From Tubulanus polymorphus (taxonomy: Eukaryota; Animalia; Nemertea), in the NCBI RefSeq assembly GCF_964204645.1, contig NC_134031.1, forward strand, positions 3,720,001-3,784,000: a stretch of 64,000 nt of DNA, read 5' to 3'. This document shows, piece by piece, positions 5,491 to 54,914 of the stretch. A program made the position numbers and the translations under genes. The first letter of the stretch is position 1, and every line of letters starts with the position of its first letter. Under the pieces are notes generated by a model. That model saw nothing but the letters and a program-made list of their open reading frames with translations, did not search any database and was not told where the DNA came from.

Positions 5491-8400
5491 ATAGTTCACC
5501 AATTTGAACAGAGGCGGGTTTTGATTGAAAGTATTGCGGTTTAGAAGCAGCATCTCTGTACCGATTCTCGATTCCGGAATAGACAGCGGGGCGTTCCGGA
5601 ATCTGTTCAGAGACCGAGTCGAGAATAGCATAACTATATCTCAGACAGTCAGTGAACTCGACGGCCGTTTCAGACATGTGAAATACTTCACCGAATTACA
5701 CAACCATTTATATTAGCAGACGTTGAAAATCGGGGAAACATAAAACGACGACGACGATCGGATGATGATTCTATCCACTTATCTATGTCACCCGCGGACG
5801 ACGTTTATAATATAGAGAACCGAGTCGCAAAACGCCAAATGAATATCAAAAAACGACTAATAGCGTTTCGAGGAGGCAGACGCATAATCGTCGCGCAAAG
5901 TGACAAAGTGTCAAACGAAAGCGCGCGCGTTATGACAGACGACGAAAGTGAACAGCCGAAGTGGCTTAAAACGCCTTCGAAAATAGATGACATTTTATGC
6001 ATTCTCCGAGTCGTCGTCGGGTTCCGTCGGCTGTACACGAGTAAACTCATAAAAACAGCCGCAGCTCTCGGCGAGCTTACGGCTTCTGGCACGACGACAG
6101 GCGACGAAGTCTCGTCGGCATCTCGTGAGACCGACTTGTTGGAAACGGAAGATAAAGTCGCGTACGCGGAAATAAAGCGAAAAACGTTCATTTCGATGAA
6201 TGTCAAAAGCTGATGAGCTTTTCTAAAAACAGATGATATTCCGAAAATGCGGCAAAATCTATACTTCTTCAACAAACGCTATCCTTTATTCAGGTCAAGG
6301 TGATGGGAAAGGTTGATTACTGTCGTGCGCGGATTTTTTCCTGACTAACACAAGAAGAAAGTTATTCATCAAATGCAGGCACAATGTGAAAAGAGGTATC
6401 TGCCCAATCAAAGGACATGCCAAAAAACTGTTGCTTATACCTTCAGAGCCAAAGGGATTCGCAACACCCCCAGAAGCCTATTTCATTAATAGACCCTTGA
6501 TTTTAATGACAATCATTTCATCTGGTTGAATATCAAACAGGTTCCACAGATGAGTAACAATTTGATATCTGAAAATGAACTACATGTAATTCAAGTCTTT
6601 GAGTCTAAGGACCCAGAAGCACATAAAATGTATTTTGTGTTTCAGAGTCAAAAGCCAGTAAGCGTTTCTGTTTTTGTGGTTGCGGATTTCTGTACTACTG
6701 TTATTTGGTTAAGTTGTCAATAAACTAATGGCGTTCGATGATAATGGTCCCAAATATGACGACAAAATAAATGAGAGTTTGACTATAGCTGCATTAACAC
6801 TGTTATGTCATCTAGAGTGGTCCAAATTAATTTAGTCCTTTCATGGACGTCTAGTTTATACGTCCACGGTCAGTTCCAATTTGGAACGGACCGAGTATTC
6901 ACGCAGGGAAAAAGTTCATACTATCAACTGGCCCATTCCATTTTAGAATGGACCAAGTTAGACTGACCAGAGATAAATCTCCGCAGTATGCACGAATAAC
7001 AGATTTCAAAATGTTTGAGAACGCACAGGTACTGTTCGGTCTTATTAGCCGCGATCACACGGAGACGATTTGGCCCGGGTCAGACCAGTCAAATTTGCCC
7101 TTGGCCAAACACGCTGGCATAATCGCAGCTTCGGTTGTTTGAAGGTACAATCAAACCGACAGACTAACGACCAATCGCGTGAACACGATGTATTTCAGCT
7201 TAGGCCTATAAGAATGTATAGATTCTCCGCCGTCTTTTTAATTGGCAGCCATTAAACCAGGTGCAAAAACATCGCATTAGATCGCATTGGATCGTGGTGT
7301 TTTTCCTCGTATTGAAACTCATGTTCGGAGTGAAGAACACCCAATAAATGGATAGATATAGATACCCACTCGCCAGAGAGAGTGGAGAGATAGAGCGGAG
7401 AGAGAGCGGAGAGAGAACGAGAAGATCGTGGGAAAATAGAACATCAACTTAAAAACATATACACTCATTCTCTCTTGAACTGACTACGAGTGGCTGCTTG
7501 TAAAAATGACGTACCGACGAAAATCACATCGAAACCATCGAAGAGGTCTGATTTCTACAAATTAGCTACTTAACTATCGTCGAAAAACAAATCACAAATA
7601 CCGGCAGATTTACGATATAAACCACTTCAAACGGGAGAGAAGATTTTTTGCCGAAACCGTGCGAAGAGACGATCTCTTGATCGCGACAGAAAAACTACGT
7701 CGCGAAATAGACGTAGAAATACACGATAAAAGAGAATTACCCTATGAATATAGATTGTGAAGTGTATGTCATAACACCAGATCGGCCATTACTCCCTGAT
7801 TGCTTAAAGTAAAGCGATGATCGCGCGGGGAAGATTTGGTTTCGGGTCAAACTGTTTCGAACCAGACCGGAGTCAAATACGCCCCTTGCCTTAGAGAGCA
7901 CTCACAAGTAAACCACTAACTAGATACTAAAACGCTATCAAAGATGCCGTGGCAAGCGAGGTGAGACACTTCCGGAACAGTTAGCATCATTCGGCATAAG
8001 ACCACAGCTCAAAGATGCGTAGGGCCAGACCCCAAAAATAGTACCTAGAGCAAAGAAAAGGTCCCCCATAAATGTTGCCATAATTCTGCAAATGGGATAG
8101 GTAACGAATTTCGGCTATATGTATGAAATCCATTGGTCCTGAGAGACAGATTGATGATAAATAAGGGATTCCCTGGACTTCTTTTTGCTTGGAGTAAGGG
8201 TACCGAACACAATGGGGGATTCCCTTGTATATTCGGCTCAGATGTACTGGCATACCTGTACTGGGATACCCCTCCTTTCTAAAGGTTTGATTATTTCAAA
8301 AGTTAGGTTGGGTATGTGGGTAAAAACCACTTCAATACGTAGCTAAGATGCTGGCCTATGAGCCATAAGCAGGATTCCCCCTGAATTTACGCGCTTATAT

Positions 8401-9254
8401 ATGAACTAAATTCTCGAATTTCTTGTTTTTACTATAGGATATAGAAGATTTTGGAATAGTGGTCTGAGCTCATTCAGCACAGGCCTGGTCGGACGTTTTG
8501 ACCAGGTTACGGACGTCTACACCAACAAACATCTCCGCCATTTCCCAGGTAATAATAAACACCACATCACTCGCCTGCCGATAATAATCGGGCTTTTAAA
8601 GAATGAAAGTGCAATGAAGGGAAGTAGAAATGCTTTTTCATCGCATGGGAAAATATTTTTATCCAACGACATTATCGAGTGCCCACGTCCACGGAAATCC
8701 TGATAATTGTATTTCACGTTTGTTTTCAATAGTCAAGCGTGTGCCGCGCCAGAACGAAAACTAAATGACCCGTTCACGTATACACAACATTCCCACAGAT
8801 ATACAGAAAAAAATAGGGAAGGGAATTGACGTCGTATTAATTTGATTTGCGTGTTGTTGCTATTGACCTGAATTCTACGACTGTTTATAGTCTCCCAATC
8901 AACGACAATTATAGAAAATAATCTTATCTATAAACGGCACGTACATAAACAACTACTTCACAATTGACAATCAATTATATCGACTTCAATGAACATTATG
9001 ATTTTTGAAAAGAGAGTAGTAGTAATGTGAAATGCCCCCCCCCCCCCCGGAAACCTTAGTTTCATTACTCCTATTCTATCATTCAGCTGCCTGATGATAG
9101 CTAGGCCTACCACTCTAGTTATTCCTGTACCAGAGCCCCCATAACAATCCCAAAGTCAGTGTCCCCAAAAACTCTATCAATTGGGACCCCTTCGCTTTCC
9201 CATAACAAATGCCTGGAACCTCCTAACTCCCTTATACTAGTAAAGGAGCCTGCT

Positions 9255-9520
9255 AACACTCCTATACCACCAAGGGGCCTCCTACCACTCTTATAGTAGT
9301 ATAGCATCCAACACTCCTATACCACCAAGGGGCCTCCTACCACTCTTATACTAGTGTAGCATCCAACACTCCTATACCACCAAGGGGCCTCCTACCACTC
9401 TTATAGTAGTATACCATCCAACACTCCTATACCACCAAGGAGCCTCCTACCACTCTTATAGTAGTATAGCATCCAACACTCCTATACCACCAAGGAGCCT
9501 CTAACACTCCTTTACCAACA
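9255..9520. repeat. 55-bp minisatellite, about 4.5 copies
   Basis: The unit CCTATACCACCAAGGGGCCTCCTACCACTCTTATAGTAGTATAGCATCCAACACT starts at 9261, 9316, 9371, 9426 and 9481. Confidence 0.95.
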
Positions 9521-10763
9521 GAAACTCCTAAACACCCCACATAATTTCACTAGATGATGACTACTATGTTACTAACTTTTATTAGGCCTATAGGCCTACG
9601 CTGAAACACTGTGGTTTCAATAAAAGATTTTTAAAGGCTATCTTCATATTTTCCGTATAAAGCATGCATTTAACGACTTGTTTCACAGAATAGCACAATA
9701 CTATAATCAAATTTAGGCCTATTTACATTATTTATCATCATAATCAGGTGAATTTTGCGCAGCATGAAATACCCTCATGTGCGCGCACCTAAGTGTAGGC
9801 CTTGGCCCACCCTTTTAGAAAGATGGCTTCATGGCTTTTTCCTGATAGGATAGCCTGAATTTTTTCTTTCTGCACAGCCCTAGTATCTACATGAAATTTT
9901 TCATATCAATGATATAGGTACTGATCGAGTACTCGCAATCTAACATTCAAGTTCCAAATAATAGGGAAAACCTGGGCTACAGAGCAAGTTCAAAGTAAAT
10001 GTCTTGAATAGCTCGGGAGGATTGCGAAATATCAACCATAGTGATGGACAATAGGCAACAAGCATAGTATGATGAAATAGTAGGAAATGCTATGCATTGT
10101 GAGATACTTAGTCATAGCGTATATGGCTTCACTGGTGACACCGCTGTCATTTCAAAACATTGTGTCCTGTTGTTTTAACAGGGACCAATTGTTTCTAATT
10201 GCTTTCAGTACATTCGGAGGACAATCAAATATCGTTTAAACAATAGGTTTGAACTCAGAACTATGGAAATATTGATTCACAATGGGTCCAATTCCATAGA
10301 ATTATTAACAGAAAAAAGGATTTAGGATTGAAAATTAACAATTTCAAGAATCAAAACATTTTGTTTTGTTTAAAAAAGCGAACACAGATTTATATTGACC
10401 TCTTAACAAGTTGATATGGGTTTTTCATTAATCTATGGCACTGGGTATCGACACAGAAAAAAGGCTAGGTCAGTAGGATAGTCATCATGATTGTTGATAT
10501 TTAATGGGTTTCAACATCATTAGACCTGATGTTGCAATGGACATATGAATATTTTAGGTAGACATATATTGTTAGTGAATGGTCAGTCAATCCTGACATT
10601 GACATAACGATTAGTTAATTAGGCTTATTGCTAATTAACAAATTTCGATATTAGGCTATTCTGAATCATTAAATTTTAAACCCACATGATTAGTCAGTTA
10701 AGTGACATTATGAAAGATAAATAAAAAGTAGGTTAGAATAGAAAACCATTAGGTGACACCTAC

Positions 10764-10902
10764 CTAGACGTATCCTAGCTTCATCCAGCCTCTGTATTTC
10801 TCTCTCGAGATGGAAAATCACGTAGAAAATGAACAGCAAACAAGCGACTCCTGCAAACCAAACGTGCTTAGTCTGCATGCCTCTAACCGATCTTAACAGC
10901 AT
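10764..10902 (-). CDS. HS2ST1: Heparan sulfate 2-O-sulfotransferase, first coding exon; remaining exons apparently left of the window
   Basis: Translates MLLRSVRGMQTKHVWFAGVACLLFIFYVIFHLEREIQRLDEARIRL, then a phase-1 donor (G|GTAGGT). This is a type II TM anchor followed by HLEREIQRLDEARIRL, resembling the remembered human HS2ST1 segment FLENQIQKLEESRSKL. A probable non-coding exon ends at a GTAAGT donor near 11276. I found no sulfotransferase (YNRVPKT) exon in 1-10763. Confidence 0.75.
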
Positions 10903-31570: not shown

Positions 31571-48457
<16,887 letters not shown>

Positions 48458-51400
48458 ATATACGTCATCAAATCATGTGAAATCTTCCGTATTTTTGCCG
48501 AAAAAAATTATGATGAGTAAAAAAATATATTTCTAAATCGAATCGAGTGCTACGTTAATATAATAATGCAATAAATCATATATTTGAATTCCCATGAAAC
48601 ATAATCACATTATTAGGCATATTCACTTTCCATATCTCGCTGATTTTGTCACCAGGTGGCAGTCCTGTAGTTTCTAGTTGTTAGATTGGCTATCGAACTA
48701 ACATGGTCTTAGAGTCGTCTTAAATCTAAGCCCTGACTACGAGACCGACCACTGGAGTCAGTTTCATGGAAAAGCTTTAAGCTCAAAACGGTTAAGAGCG
48801 AATCCATTATCTTCATTGAAAACATGGAGTTACTGATAGCATCTTAGCCAAAAATTTTGAGCTCAAGTTTTTCGAGAAGTTTCGTTGGGGAATTTCAGAA
48901 TATTGAATTCTTTCAGTGCTTGTTTGGATGGTTATACTGTGATATAAAGACCTCTTTTTGCCTTTTCAAATCTTCTTACTAAATAATTAGAATATGTAGA
49001 TGCAGATTTTTTAAATATTATGTAAAATCGACTGTAAAAGTATCTTGCACTAGTGGAGTGCTGTTTTTAGCAAATTTATGGAAAATTTTTTAGAAAAGCA
49101 ATAAGTAATGTATCATTTTGATTAGAAAAATAAGAAATACTTTTTTGTAAAAAATTGGACCCACTTTCACTGTTGATAGGCTTAAGCCACGTTCACACTA
49201 TGTTCTAATTTCAGAACGGACCAATTAAGATCGACCAAAAAGATTGACCCAGTTCCATTCTAAATGTTAGAACAGACCATTTCTCTTGTGTTCGACTGGA
49301 GTGTTGGGTCAAGCTGGACCCAGTGATGAACAATCATTTGGTCTAATGTGAATTGGTGCATTCCAGGTAGAGGCCAGTTTTAACAAGTGATAGTTTGAAT
49401 GCAGTGCCCTTTAAACTTGTGCCAGGTCTCCTGCTGCAGCCTTCATCAATACATTCCATTTACTATCTTATACTTTTAAACATTGCTCGATACTTTTTAC
49501 GGTGAATGCCTATTTTTATATGAAAGATAAAAGAATGTTGCCAGCCAAGGACACTGTGATAAATTAATTACTACTCATAATTAATTGTTGTTGATTATTA
49601 TTATCATTATTAGTAATATATTTATTAGAATTGATACGATTTCATATCATGCATAAAATTGAGTGCTGTCAATTTTCAAGTCAATGTATTGATTGATGAC
49701 TTGAAGTTTTTTTTCAATAATTTGCTTCATCTCAGGGGTACATAGTGCCTACCTCTTTTAGGACATAACATGACCCCAGATTCTGGGATATGGGCTTCTC
49801 CAAACCATCATTTTTCGAACAGTTCTATACCAATTCAAAGCATTGTCAGAGGGTCTTCTTTTGTTAAAGTTATGTTGAATCAGAGCCTTTCGTGAAATTT
49901 CTTGGATTAGGCCTAGTACTTATCTAATTATGATTCGATTATTTAGTAACTGTATTGGGGGGAGGATATTGGGAACCAGAGGCTGTAAATACTTACGTAT
50001 CCCTTATTGTAAATAGGTATGAAAAAAATTTGTGGCGTCAAGCGTCACATGGTCCAAATATGGAAATGATTGGCTTCTATGCATCAAACGTTTTATCACA
50101 ATGTATAGTAGAAACTATTTCAGTATCCATCCAAAACTCGAGAAACATTCCAATGAAAATCATCCAACGATTTTACTGCTAAGATTGTTAACCGTAAAAT
50201 TAAGACAATTTTGATCGTTTTGAAGTCAACCACCTGTACAGATCGATTCTTTACTTTTAACGATGTTTTGTTTAAGATGGCTTTGAAACTACTTTTATAG
50301 TATCTAGAAGATGTACGGATAGATTCTATAGAATAGTTTTGATTTAGATTGTGTTATTAATGGTTTAATTTTTCGCCCAGTTAATTCCCAAAGACAAGAA
50401 TACGTGCAGATTTATCAGTCGTATGATCAAAGATGTCCATGGAAGCAAAAACCTTTGGCTAAAAAGTCTGAGGCCGATTTCAAAGGCATTATAACTTAAA
50501 CTCTGACGGTAAATAAACTCAATTGACTTAAAGTTAACTCCACAGCGTCAAAGTTTAAAACCTCTTTGAAACTGGCTTCTTTTTCTGTGGACTAACTGCT
50601 CATTAGAATATTTTTTATCGCCGCATTGCGACATTTACGCAGGCATGATTTTCCTGGATTGTACGTTGATACTGCGAACTTAAGGAATGCGCATTGCACA
50701 CACTTCGCTTCGCCTAGGGTTTTAATGGTTTTTAAACGGTGCAATAATCACGTCGGTTTTATTTACTTAAACGGTAGTTTTTCGAATTTGTCCATGTCAA
50801 AAAAATACTCATTAATCTTATAGACACATTTGTGGTCTAGACTGCTGAATTAAAGACAAAAAGATTAATTGTAAAAAGTGATGATGATTTAGTTTTGTAA
50901 AAAAAAAGGAAACAGGTTTTCTATATTGCCCTGTGAAGTAGAACTGATAGATAGTCTTCCGGGGGGCACAGTCCCCTTGGAAAACAGTTAGGAACGTACC
51001 CTGGAACCAGAACCAGAAGCCAATTCCACAGTTTTGGGTTCCATAATGGACTTTTTAGAACTCTACTCAAGTCAGACCTAACTGTGGAACTGGCTTCAGT
51101 ACAACATTCAACTTAGCAGTTAAATGACTTGGTAGAGTAAACCTTGTCTTACTCTGACAAACTGGGACCAGTAGAAGTGGTCCTAGGTTAATGAGGTCCA
51201 AGTAGAGGATAGCAAAATATGTTAGCAAGTCACAAAATTCCGAATTAGCCAAAAGTCTTGAGTTAGCCATGTCAGAGTGAGGCGAAGTTTACTGTAATCA
51301 ATAAATGAGTTTTTGAGTAAATCTAGAATGTGTCATCTCGGCTACCGATTCACAGGGCTTTTATAGCAAAAGTTATTTTTTGGATTGCGGTGTCTACCTA

Positions 51401-52639
51401 CATAACTAATCTAATTGTTGTAGTTGGAGTTTGAATTGCTAACACTAATAATAAGATTACGGTCACAGTTTTGTCCTCATGTGTGTCACACATTTTTGTA
51501 CATGGAACGATTTTACCCACCCATATTATCACGCGCGCGCGCGAGCGCTTATCAAGGAGTAATCTAACCAAAGAACAAAATACATATTTACGCATCTTCG
51601 TTCGAAGTTTTAAAAGTTTAAAACTCACCTGGGGGTCAGTTACCACATGTAAATCGGAAATAATGCATCAGTTGTTGAGATTTCAACTTCGTTTAAGACC
51701 TCAGACCACTGACTGAGAGATATTTTGTCTCCACGGCTAGGAACCCATAGCTACAAGACAGAAGCTTGGCAACCAGAAAGAGCCATAGCAATCAAGAAAA
51801 ATCCACCATTCTGTTTATGATGATAGAGGTTTTTGGGTTTTTTTAACCGGCCTCTAGGTTCTAGACCTTCTTGTGAGTTTCCGCAATACAAAGCGCTGAA
51901 GCAATGCACCTTCTTATCACTAACACATTTTTGTTGATGTTTTTTTTTCTGAATTATTTGAATGATTTTAGATATTTGTATAGTTTGTCTCTTGTCTAAT
52001 TATAATCGTTATCAATGCAAAATATTGAAAAAGTGTTTACTATTTACTATTGATATCTATGTCTATTATAGAGCCATGTACAGATATATAGAATGATTAA
52101 ACACTCCCTCCTGAGTCAGAAGGGAGTGTTGTGTAAATTTGAATAGGTGTTTGTGTGTATCCATATCGACAGAATGTAGTTGTTGCCTAGGACCCACAGT
52201 TAAAATGGTTTTGTTGAACTCTGAGGAACAAAATTAGTTCATTTCTAATGATTTCCTCACAGAAAAGCTTTAAGTCATAAGTAAATTGACATATGATGAA
52301 CTGAATGAATTGCACTGATTTAAATGTTAAAATGTTGAACACTCTTGTGGAATCCAATCCTGGAGTCTAAATTTTATTCAACCTACGGAATATCTTCATG
52401 AATGATTGATTCTTTCAAGACTCAATCAGCAGCTTTGGCTCAGAAAGATATTCGGGAAAAGACTCAAAATTTTCAATCAAATAATTTGCAAAATTCTCGC
52501 ATAACTGTGCAGAACTAGGTTCTGGTTTTTAGACTCTACAATGTCTGTCAATCAATTGGGTAGTTTGAATGTATTAAGAGTATTGATTGTCGTTATGTGT
52601 AAATTTAACTTGCGAGTTTTCGAGCTCGCAAAAAACATC

Positions 52640-53204
52640 GTCCTATCAGCTAATCCGTCCATGATTTAGCGATTACCATCTGGTCGCGTGGTTGGTCGGT
52701 GTCCCTGCTACCACTGCGCCAAGGTGGATGTTTTTGTATTTGATTTATATATATATTTATGATATTGTGTAATTGTCTTATGTTTTTACAAACCTTCAAA
52801 ATTCAAACTTTAGCAGACATGAATTTCTGGCATCAGTCCAAATTTGAAAAACTTTCCAAAACTGATATGATTCCTGCTACTGTTTGCATTTTTTTGTGGT
52901 TTTATGGTTTTATGAAGCTAAGCTGCTTTTCTAGTGTGAGAGAAATCCCTAAATTCAGTGATGATCTTTTTTGACATCTCGAATGAAGCAGGGTGTCCTT
53001 ATCAGTAAATCCGTCCATGATTAATAATGCTGATTCATTATGTATATAATATTGATGTTTGTGTGTGATGTATCTTCAAATGAAAAGCTGAATTTTGAGA
53101 ATGTAAATCTGTGGTTTTGCCTATATTTTCCAAAATGTTATACTGATTTTCATATCATGAAAGAATCATGAATTTTGTCCTTTTTTATCAGTGAATTCCA
53201 TCCA
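52640..53204 (+). promoter_or_regulatory. Cluster of three extended miR-184-complementary sites (candidate TDMD trigger or sponge)
   Basis: GTCCTATCAGCTAATCCGTCCA (52640-52661), GTCCTTATCAGTAAATCCGTCCA (52995-53017) and GTCCTTTTTTATCAGTGAATTCCATCCA (53177-53204), compared with the miR-184 reverse complement GCCCTTATCAGTTCTCCGTCCA. Confidence 0.75.
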
Positions 53205-54914
53205 TGGTTAGCTAACTGCTCCAACATAAAGAGACTAGCAGGATGAAGACCTTGTTTAAAGGAGTTTCATTCTGCCAGCACTTTTTACAGTTGGAGAGTT
53301 ACAGTATACCACAATGCTGAATTTATTATAATCTATTACTGTATCCATATCATACATATATAGGCCTAAATATCGTGTCTAAAATTGTTTTTAATTTATT
53401 TTTAATGTTTTTAGTAGAAATTTCTTCATCTACACTTCGTTGATGTCGACCATATTGTAGCCCTTGAGTCTAGTGTTGACTGGGCGTATATTGTCTGAAT
53501 CTTCGCTGATTTTGTAAAATGTCTTTTTTAAACGATTTTCAACGACCAATATTTGTTGATATTCTATGATATTCCAGATGATGACTGCGATTATGAGTGT
53601 TATTCGTAACAATGATATTTGCTGTTGAAACAATTGTAGAGATATTCTACTTGTGGTAGTGTTACAATAAATAGTCAAAAATAGATCAGTTGTTTTAACA
53701 AACTTCTTTCTTCAGACTTATTCATGTTGCTAGGAGATATTATCGAGAAACCTTTACAATGCATTTGTGAAGAAATGCTCAAGGATCATCCACAAGTAAG
53801 AGGTTCATGTAGTTCCATTCGTTTGAATCCACTGATTCTGCCTATAGATGTCTTGGTGGCCATGTGCCTTTCCACGCCATATTTTTGGTTGTACGCAATA
53901 AGTTAATGCCTTGATCCAGTCTACTCACTACGTAAGGGAAGACGACACCCTAACAGCAATCCTGTTGTATGACATCGGATATCTCCATCAAGTTGTGTTG
54001 TAGACTCAGGGGTGGGTTTGCACACTCTACCGAGGTACAGGGGGGGGGGTAGGGGGTGTACATGAGTCTTGCAGCCACTAAACGATGTTTATGAATCTCC
54101 TGGTTATGTTGTTGTTATGTATGACAAGTCTACAGGGCAGCACTGGTTGGCAAACGATGGCATCACATCCTACTATAGACCTCTATAGGCCTTCTTGTGG
54201 CTTACAACCAAGACTTGATGGACTCTAAAACATTCTAGAGTCCTTGGGCCAGTTCCCCAGTCGTCGTGACTTAAGTCCAAAAGTGGTCTTACATCTTGAA
54301 GTTGTTAGATTGGCTGTAGAACTAAGTTGGTCTTAGACGGGACTTAGTCAAAGCCATGACTCCGCAACTGGCCCCCCTTACGTCTACCTGGCATAGAACA
54401 CCCAGATTGGTTTGCAAGAAATCTAGCTTCTCTACTAAATGATCGAAACTGTGAAAACAACCCCGATCCAGGTACATGTGCGTGCCAAGTGAAGTCCAAG
54501 AGTATTCTCGTTGCGTGGCAACCCAAGGACCATCTAGAATAAAATTCATCTTCACTCAGGACCTTGTGTACGAAATAGATCTGAATCTAGCAAAGTAAAA
54601 TAGTCAACAAGAAACACAGCTGATGTATATTACATAAATTGATACGATATTTATATATTTTAACATATCAAATTTTACAAGTTTTCCAAATATATGATAC
54701 AAATATTAACATCTCCGTCGTCACTGATTTCAGCAGAAAAAGTGATATTTATCTATTATCAATGAATACACAAGCACAATACCCAGTACTTATTGAACAA
54801 GATGGGTGAATATTATTCCGACTAACATGAAATATTCCTTCTCTTTCGACGCGAAACTTCACATATTCACCCACATCTTCACATATTCCCTGAATTTTAA
54901 ACCATTGTCTAGTG

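Follow-up and report, generated by a model that had tools for sequence, protein, structure and literature searches.

The window, that is, the whole 64,000-nucleotide stretch that was analysed, spans C7:3,720,001-3,784,000 of the 268-Mb Tubulanus polymorphus genome. It contains the gene for CFAP107 and, behind it, a transcribed stretch with three sites complementary to miR-184. The features are as follows, in window positions:

31619..48457, plus strand: CFAP107 gene, with coding exons at ~31,619-31,684, 38,972-39,267 and 48,169-48,457 (stop codon 48,455-48,457)
48570..48575, plus strand: proximal CFAP107 AATAAA, directly preceded (48,569) by the end of the RNA contig that includes the final coding exon
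48662..53660, plus strand (probable): unspliced, ORF-poor transcribed stretch carrying the sites, tiled by contigs of run X1
52640..52661, plus strand: miR-184 site 1, with an 8mer seed match, a 4x3 central loop, and nt 12-17 and 19-22 paired
52995..53017, plus strand: miR-184 site 2, with an 8mer seed match, nt 9-10 looped out and 12 pairs to nt 11-22 (G:U at nt 21)
53177..53204, plus strand: miR-184 site 3, degenerate, mismatched in the seed at nt 5 and with 4 target nt bulged out of the 3' pairing
53666..53671, plus strand: AATAAA poly(A) signal ending the transcribed stretch; contigs of runs X1 and X3 end at 53,660 and 53,643

CFAP107 and the RNA downstream of it

A CFAP107 gene upstream of the sites had been recognised in an earlier, sequence-only reading of the window, and it is indeed there: three exons, all on the plus strand, match Pfam PF22595, the middle one best (E 3e-34). 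The cyclin L gene named as the other border was not found in the plus-strand frames of 55-64 kb. The same reading had taken the region for an unannotated non-coding one. Rather than an orphan island, it has to be tied to CFAP107, as either a long 3' UTR isoform of that gene or a separate co-oriented non-coding RNA downstream of it; a repeat at 48.6-48.7 kb, which breaks the assembly, hides any continuity with CFAP107.

Evidence of transcription comes from contigs assembled from public runs, which in themselves do not show strand, start, end or level. Run X1 derives from RNA, as is plain from a contig in which 39,267 is followed directly by 48,169, the last CFAP107 intron (8.9 kb) having been spliced out. 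A single 963-nt contig of this run (52,369-53,331) spans all three sites with zero differences, and no X1 contig falls within 53,700-54,099. The k-mer depth of X1, a poor measure of RNA level, climbs from ~10 to 63 toward 53.66 kb, against 22 on the CFAP107 coding exon. The ORFs of the 48,662-53,660 stretch gave no Pfam domain, and no minus-strand poly(A) signal was found near 48.66 kb. Since the contigs stop at the plus-strand AATAAA at 53,666, a plus-strand, unspliced, polyadenylated RNA extending up to ~5 kb downstream of CFAP107 is likely. The plus-strand transcript postulated earlier is borne out as far as RNA coverage of the three sites goes, while its strand is read from the poly(A) signal and the rising depth rather than from stranded reads.

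On either side of the interval lies a copy of a short interspersed repeat, both in the same orientation (48,640-48,760 and 54,250-54,380). X1 k-mer depth reaches ~200 on these copies, and contigs of all runs branch there into other copies. A contig of run X3 (2014, same species label) covers 52,915-53,225 with 10 differences and one insertion over 311 nt, or ~3%.

Pairing of the three sites with miR-184

Nine mir-184 hairpins were detected genome-wide with the Rfam model RF00657. Two of them, on C12 (1,911,047-1,912,058, minus strand), contain the canonical mature miRNA, UGGACGGAGAACUGAUAAGGGC; the better of the pair reaches 67 bits with the model. The 22-mer used in the earlier reading is identical to this mature sequence, and the 3' pairing claimed for the sites holds with the local miR-184. 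The remaining seven hairpins form a paralog cluster at C7:15,050,823-15,052,837 (~15.05 Mb, plus strand). In the mature arms of this cluster, nt 1-8 are retained throughout and nt 14-22 in almost all cases, most of the variation falling at nt 9-13; the central loop of the sites lets all five paralog variants pair too.

The coordinates and letters reported for the three sites match the sequence exactly, and RNAduplex returns the same pairing for each. Site 2 is paired at nt 1-8 and 11-22 (-32.7 kcal/mol), site 1 at nt 1-8, 12-17 and 19-22 (-26.6 kcal/mol) and site 3 at nt 1-4, 6-9 and 11-22 (-21.2 kcal/mol). Pairing of the TDMD type, which combines a seed match, extensive pairing of the miRNA 3' end and a central mismatch or loop, is found in sites 2 and 1. 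These two also rank first and second among the duplexes of the whole window (21,322 positions, both strands; mean -8.8, sd 3.3). When miR-184 was shuffled 3,000 times with its composition preserved, no version found an equally good seed site in the 6 kb that follow CFAP107.

As a 23-nt repeat, sites 1 and 2 differ by two substitutions, both in the central loop that is unpaired with the miRNA. The predicted accessibility of the three seed matches lies at the 83rd-89th percentile along the transcript. A U opposite G21 is common to all Tubulanus sites, and nearly all of the sites compared in this work have A at both t1 and t9. The GTCC start and TG(A/G)TT flank already described for the sites are real, with sequence beyond the flanks aligning poorly. 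The sites do not belong to a high-copy repeat: allowing up to two mismatches, the 23-mer occurs in the 268 Mb only at sites 1 and 2. Pieces of 140 nt around the sites match only themselves in a genome search, which rules out an interspersed repeat.

Other identities were rejected as well. Folding of both strands gave no hairpin and never placed a site in a stem (z-scores -1.8 to +0.8), and Rfam returned no family at gathering score for the sites and no mir-184 match even at E 10; a mir-184 gene, or an antisense or minus-strand miR-184-like hairpin, was dismissed for want of both a stem and an Rfam match. Weak C/D snoRNA-like Rfam matches occur around site 2 only (21-26 bits, E 0.55-3). A C/D box snoRNA at this site was discarded, as the best match has 26 bits against a gathering score of 44 (40-48 across the families) and sites 1 and 3 are without C or D boxes. 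A putative fourth site at 50,412 was dropped on inspection, and the transcript contained nothing convincing among enriched 7-8mers for other miRNAs.

Site 1 lies between two hairpins, a 9-bp palindromic one upstream (52,610-52,631) and a GC-rich one downstream (52,676-52,725). The minus strand of the latter resembles the 5' half of a tRNA; a tRNA or SINE origin was rejected, ARAGORN being negative and the piece unique in the genome. At site 1, as at the CFAP107 site of Lineus and the SPMIP1 site of Lottia described below, a UAUCA(G) segment can pair with the downstream (C)UGAU(A) flank. Such predicted pairing may be the reason for the conserved TGATT flank; the folding signal is weak (z -1.4 to -1.8).

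miR-184 sites behind axonemal genes in other loci and species

We searched the 268 Mb with a pattern consisting of the complement of nt 13-22, a gap of 2-10 nt and a 6mer seed match. Nine matches were obtained: seven mir-184 genes (on the other strand), site 2 and a site at C3:216,300-216,323; the reversed pattern, used as control, gave none. The C3 site (-29.9 kcal/mol) lies in sense 830 nt downstream of an intronless gene for SPMIP1. Like CFAP107, SPMIP1 (ATP6V1FNB) is one of the microtubule inner proteins in axonemal doublets (PMC10973386). With both non-self matches (two of two) lying behind genes of this kind, a chance origin is very unlikely.

Two further groups of miR-184 matches stand out in the genome. 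On the minus strand of C12, positions 1,921,449 and 1,921,573 hold near-perfect sites (-34.7 kcal/mol, 1-nt target bulge), also with U opposite G21, ~9.5 kb upstream of the mir-184 genes and on the same strand. On the minus strand of C7, nine 6-8mer seed matches, mostly seed-only, fall within 850 nt (4,290,721-4,291,560), ~4-5 kb downstream of an MFS/nodulin-like transporter gene. Both groups share with the window sites the miRNA and the clustering on one strand. The window sites are unlike either, the C12 sites being near-perfect and the C7 matches at 4.29 Mb mostly seed-only. As the gene upstream of the latter is not a cilia gene, the cilia theme misses some miR-184 clusters. An MFS/nodulin-like gene is the direct neighbour of CFAP107 in Lottia, which suggests old synteny.

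For CFAP107 in other genomes, the largest exon alone served as query, the exons not being joined, and full-length relatives were then found through the recovered protein. T. polymorphus is a palaeonemertean and Lineus longissimus belongs to the Pilidiophora; we take the miR-184 of Lineus, Lingula, Lottia and Paralvinella to be identical to that of Tubulanus. The sites retained at orthologous genes, all in sense orientation, are these:

CFAP107, Lineus longissimus: 850 nt beyond the coding end, with an 8mer seed and pairs at nt 13-17 and 19-22, -27.2 kcal/mol
CFAP107, one further mRNA contig: 190 nt past the stop, miR-184 seed site, nt 1-11 paired
SPMIP1, Tubulanus: C3:216,300-216,324 (2000-2024 in the extracted locus), -29.9 kcal/mol
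SPMIP1, Lineus: 7943-7966 and 9498-9522 in the extracted locus, two sites, -28.9 and -29.4 kcal/mol
SPMIP1, Lingula anatina: 9935-9955 in the extracted locus, -25.8 kcal/mol
SPMIP1, Lottia gigantea: 8549-8571 in the extracted locus, -25.5 kcal/mol
SPMIP1, Paralvinella palmiformis: 10793-10813 in the extracted locus, -26.2 kcal/mol

A miR-184 site is thus kept by CFAP107 in Lineus and one mRNA contig, and by SPMIP1 in five species. The Lineus CFAP107 site is the best duplex in its 25.8-kb locus, equalled by 4 of 3,000 shuffles. Since the rest of the interval has no significant similarity between the two nemerteans, the site is conserved as an island; the conservation expected from the window alone is seen in the one nemertean relative compared, a distant one. 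CFAP107 of Lingula and Lottia, and two further CFAP107 loci from ENA assemblies, are without an extended miR-184 site.

Downstream of SPMIP1 the sites lie 0.8-2.9 kb past the stop in all five species, with 9-11 pairs in nt 11-22 and nt 9-10 never paired. Between Tubulanus and Lineus the site is the sole BLAST-detectable island in ~6 kb of downstream sequence. No shuffled miRNA gave sites at or below -25 kcal/mol in at least two of six regions, while the real miR-184 does so in five of the six. What loci and species have in common is exactly the two segments that pair with miR-184; loops and flanks differ. The window sites belong to a broader link, conserved across species, that joins miR-184 to genes for axonemal microtubule inner proteins.

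In nemertean SPMIP1 a conserved mini-hairpin with a stem of 4-5 bp (GCCA/UGGC) holds the seed match in its loop of 10-12 nt (Tubulanus 2013-2032; Lineus 7955-7974 and 9511-9530 in the extracted loci), again with a weak folding signal (z -1.4 to -1.8). An FBXL5-like gene (hemerythrin, F-box, LRR) stands head-to-head with SPMIP1 in Tubulanus, Lineus, Lingula and Lottia.

What the sites may do

Because comparable sites are found elsewhere and shuffled miRNAs almost never match them, we consider the window sites to be functional miR-184 elements, and the link between miR-184 and cilia genes to be an old one. They are probably real regulatory elements, and we put the probability that they act as such on a plus-strand RNA, where miR-184 would bind them, at roughly 0.85. 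The kind of element is known; what is new is the instance, the gene association and the depth of conservation.

How binding would act is a matter of lesser confidence. In the mechanism that we favour, these would be genuine, selected miR-184 sites on a polyadenylated plus-strand RNA extending from shortly behind the coding region of CFAP107 as far as the poly(A) signal at 53,666. A miR-184-carrying Argonaute would first engage the accessible 8mer seed match, and pairing would then extend to nt 11/12-22 of the miRNA; with nt 9-10 unpaired, the RNA would not be sliced. The RNA would titrate miR-184 and, like known TDMD triggers, mark it for decay, in cells running a cilia or sperm-flagellum programme. 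Four observations favour this action on the miRNA, be it TDMD or decoy: pairing reaches the last nucleotides of miR-184, the central mismatch is universal, the principal CFAP107 mRNA apparently stops at a poly(A) signal of its own, 4 kb upstream, and the downstream RNA has the higher depth. We hold to such an effect on miR-184 tentatively, giving it somewhat less than even odds.

The ZSWIM8-dependent TDMD triggers to compare are Cyrano/miR-7, NREP/miR-29b, Drosophila Marge/miR-310 family and 3' UTR triggers such as Ago1/miR-999. The window sites resemble them in the seed match, in the small central loop that blocks slicing and in the long pairing to the miRNA 3' end, as well as in their setting, a conserved island amid unconserved sequence in a non-coding RNA or 3' UTR. 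Unlike those triggers, the present RNA has three sites instead of one. Three are more usual for repression or sponging, and they count against catalytic TDMD. A search of the genome for SWIM domains gave 11 matches, mostly transposon-like and none assignable to ZSWIM8. Sponge RNAs (CDR1as/miR-7, competing endogenous lncRNAs) likewise carry several same-strand, centrally mismatched sites on a well-expressed, apparently non-coding RNA; the window RNA differs from them in having only three sites, and no circular junction was seen among the contigs.

The sequence-only reading had a transcript here degrading or sponging miR-184. Its sites, 3' pairing and RNA coverage have stood up, but ordinary high-affinity repression fits the conserved link about as well. 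The three sites would then be very high-affinity targets in a long CFAP107 3' UTR isoform; through them, and through those of SPMIP1, miR-184 would keep axonemal genes off in cells expressing it, the 3' pairing serving only to raise affinity and occupancy. We regard this as a serious alternative, to be believed with a little more than one-third confidence. In each of the species looked at, the sites come after the coding region and in sense, the prevalent A at t1 and t9 is like that of canonical conserved sites, the seed site of the further CFAP107 mRNA contig is 190 nt past the stop, and multiple sites would suit cooperative repression. For this miRNA, the G-rich nt 19-21 may just be the part at which 3'-supplementary pairing gains most in affinity, which would serve repression no less.

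A precedent exists in the let-7 sites of lin-41, which are repressive and whose extended pairing is deeply conserved. Like these and other canonical sites with 3'-supplementary or compensatory pairing, the window sites combine an 8mer seed, an A at t1, no pairing in the centre and further pairs on the 3' side, and they lie in sense downstream of the coding region within a deeply conserved miRNA-gene pair. Against repression, 3'-supplementary pairing in canonical sites usually amounts to 3-6 pairs centred on nt 13-16, whereas here it comprises 10-12 pairs and extends through nt 22. Unlike canonical sites, moreover, those of the window are 4.2-4.7 kb beyond the stop codon and past the proximal poly(A) signal at 48,570, where the RNA contig with the last CFAP107 coding exon stops. 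The downstream stretch is also deeper in k-mers than the coding exon, so that most of this RNA may be detached from the coding sequence.

Expression data from mussel bear on the same question: miR-184 is ovary-biased and low in testis there, and SPMIP1/ATP6V1FNB is among its predicted, differentially expressed targets (PMC7804246). The pattern fits repression as well as TDMD or decoy. In the literature searched, SPMIP1 is connected with miR-184 only in this mussel target list, and no paper links the miRNA with CFAP107.

That the sites are functionless relics of duplicated mir-184 genes, old 5p or antisense 3p arms of a decayed cluster, is improbable. The genome does hold nine mir-184 hairpins in clusters of similar spacing, the real 5p arms start with a similar (G)TCCTT(A/G)TCA, and the U opposite G21 runs through all Tubulanus sites. 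A relic is contradicted by the folding and Rfam results given above, with no hairpin on either strand, the sites outside stems and no mir-184 match. The seed complement is perfect in the sites and imperfect in real star arms, the loss of the partner arm with the site arm intact is not what neutral decay leaves, and the link with CFAP107 is conserved in Lineus.

Least probable of all is that the minus strand or some other conserved unit, such as a C/D box snoRNA guide or a protein-binding motif, is what functions here and that complementarity to miR-184 is incidental: the weak snoRNA-like matches at site 2, the blindness of contigs to strand and the conservation of the TGATT flank outside the miRNA-pairing part speak for it, but those matches are far under the gathering scores, sites 1 and 3 have no C/D boxes, no minus-strand poly(A) signal lies near 48.66 kb, and the common part of loci and species is confined to the two segments that pair with miR-184, loops and flanks being different.

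To return to decay of miR-184, the preferred outcome, its broadest form would have CFAP107 and SPMIP1 transcripts carry an ancient, pan-lophotrochozoan TDMD trigger, by which cells building motile cilia or sperm flagella would clear miR-184 as they differentiate; we consider this unlikely, though worth stating. To our knowledge, the endogenous RNAs that cause the decay of a microRNA are very few, and none of them concerns miR-184 or comes from a spiralian. The earlier statement that no miR-184 trigger has been described agrees with the searchable literature, which holds no paper linking miR-184, as a substrate, to TDMD or ZSWIM8.

Altogether, a transcribed RNA with two TDMD-grade miR-184 sites has been found, and like sites lie behind two structural genes of cilia and the sperm flagellum in nemerteans and, for SPMIP1, also in brachiopods, molluscs and annelids. 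Whatever binding does, miRNA and targets form a pair whose conservation is deep and takes in the pairing at the miRNA 3' end, and this provides a concrete hypothesis for a role of miR-184 in ciliated and male germ cells. The natural variants in loop and 3' pairing are useful for telling decay triggers from repression sites. If an ancient TDMD trigger proved to be true, it would predate every other known trigger by a wide margin, and miR-184 would have its first one.
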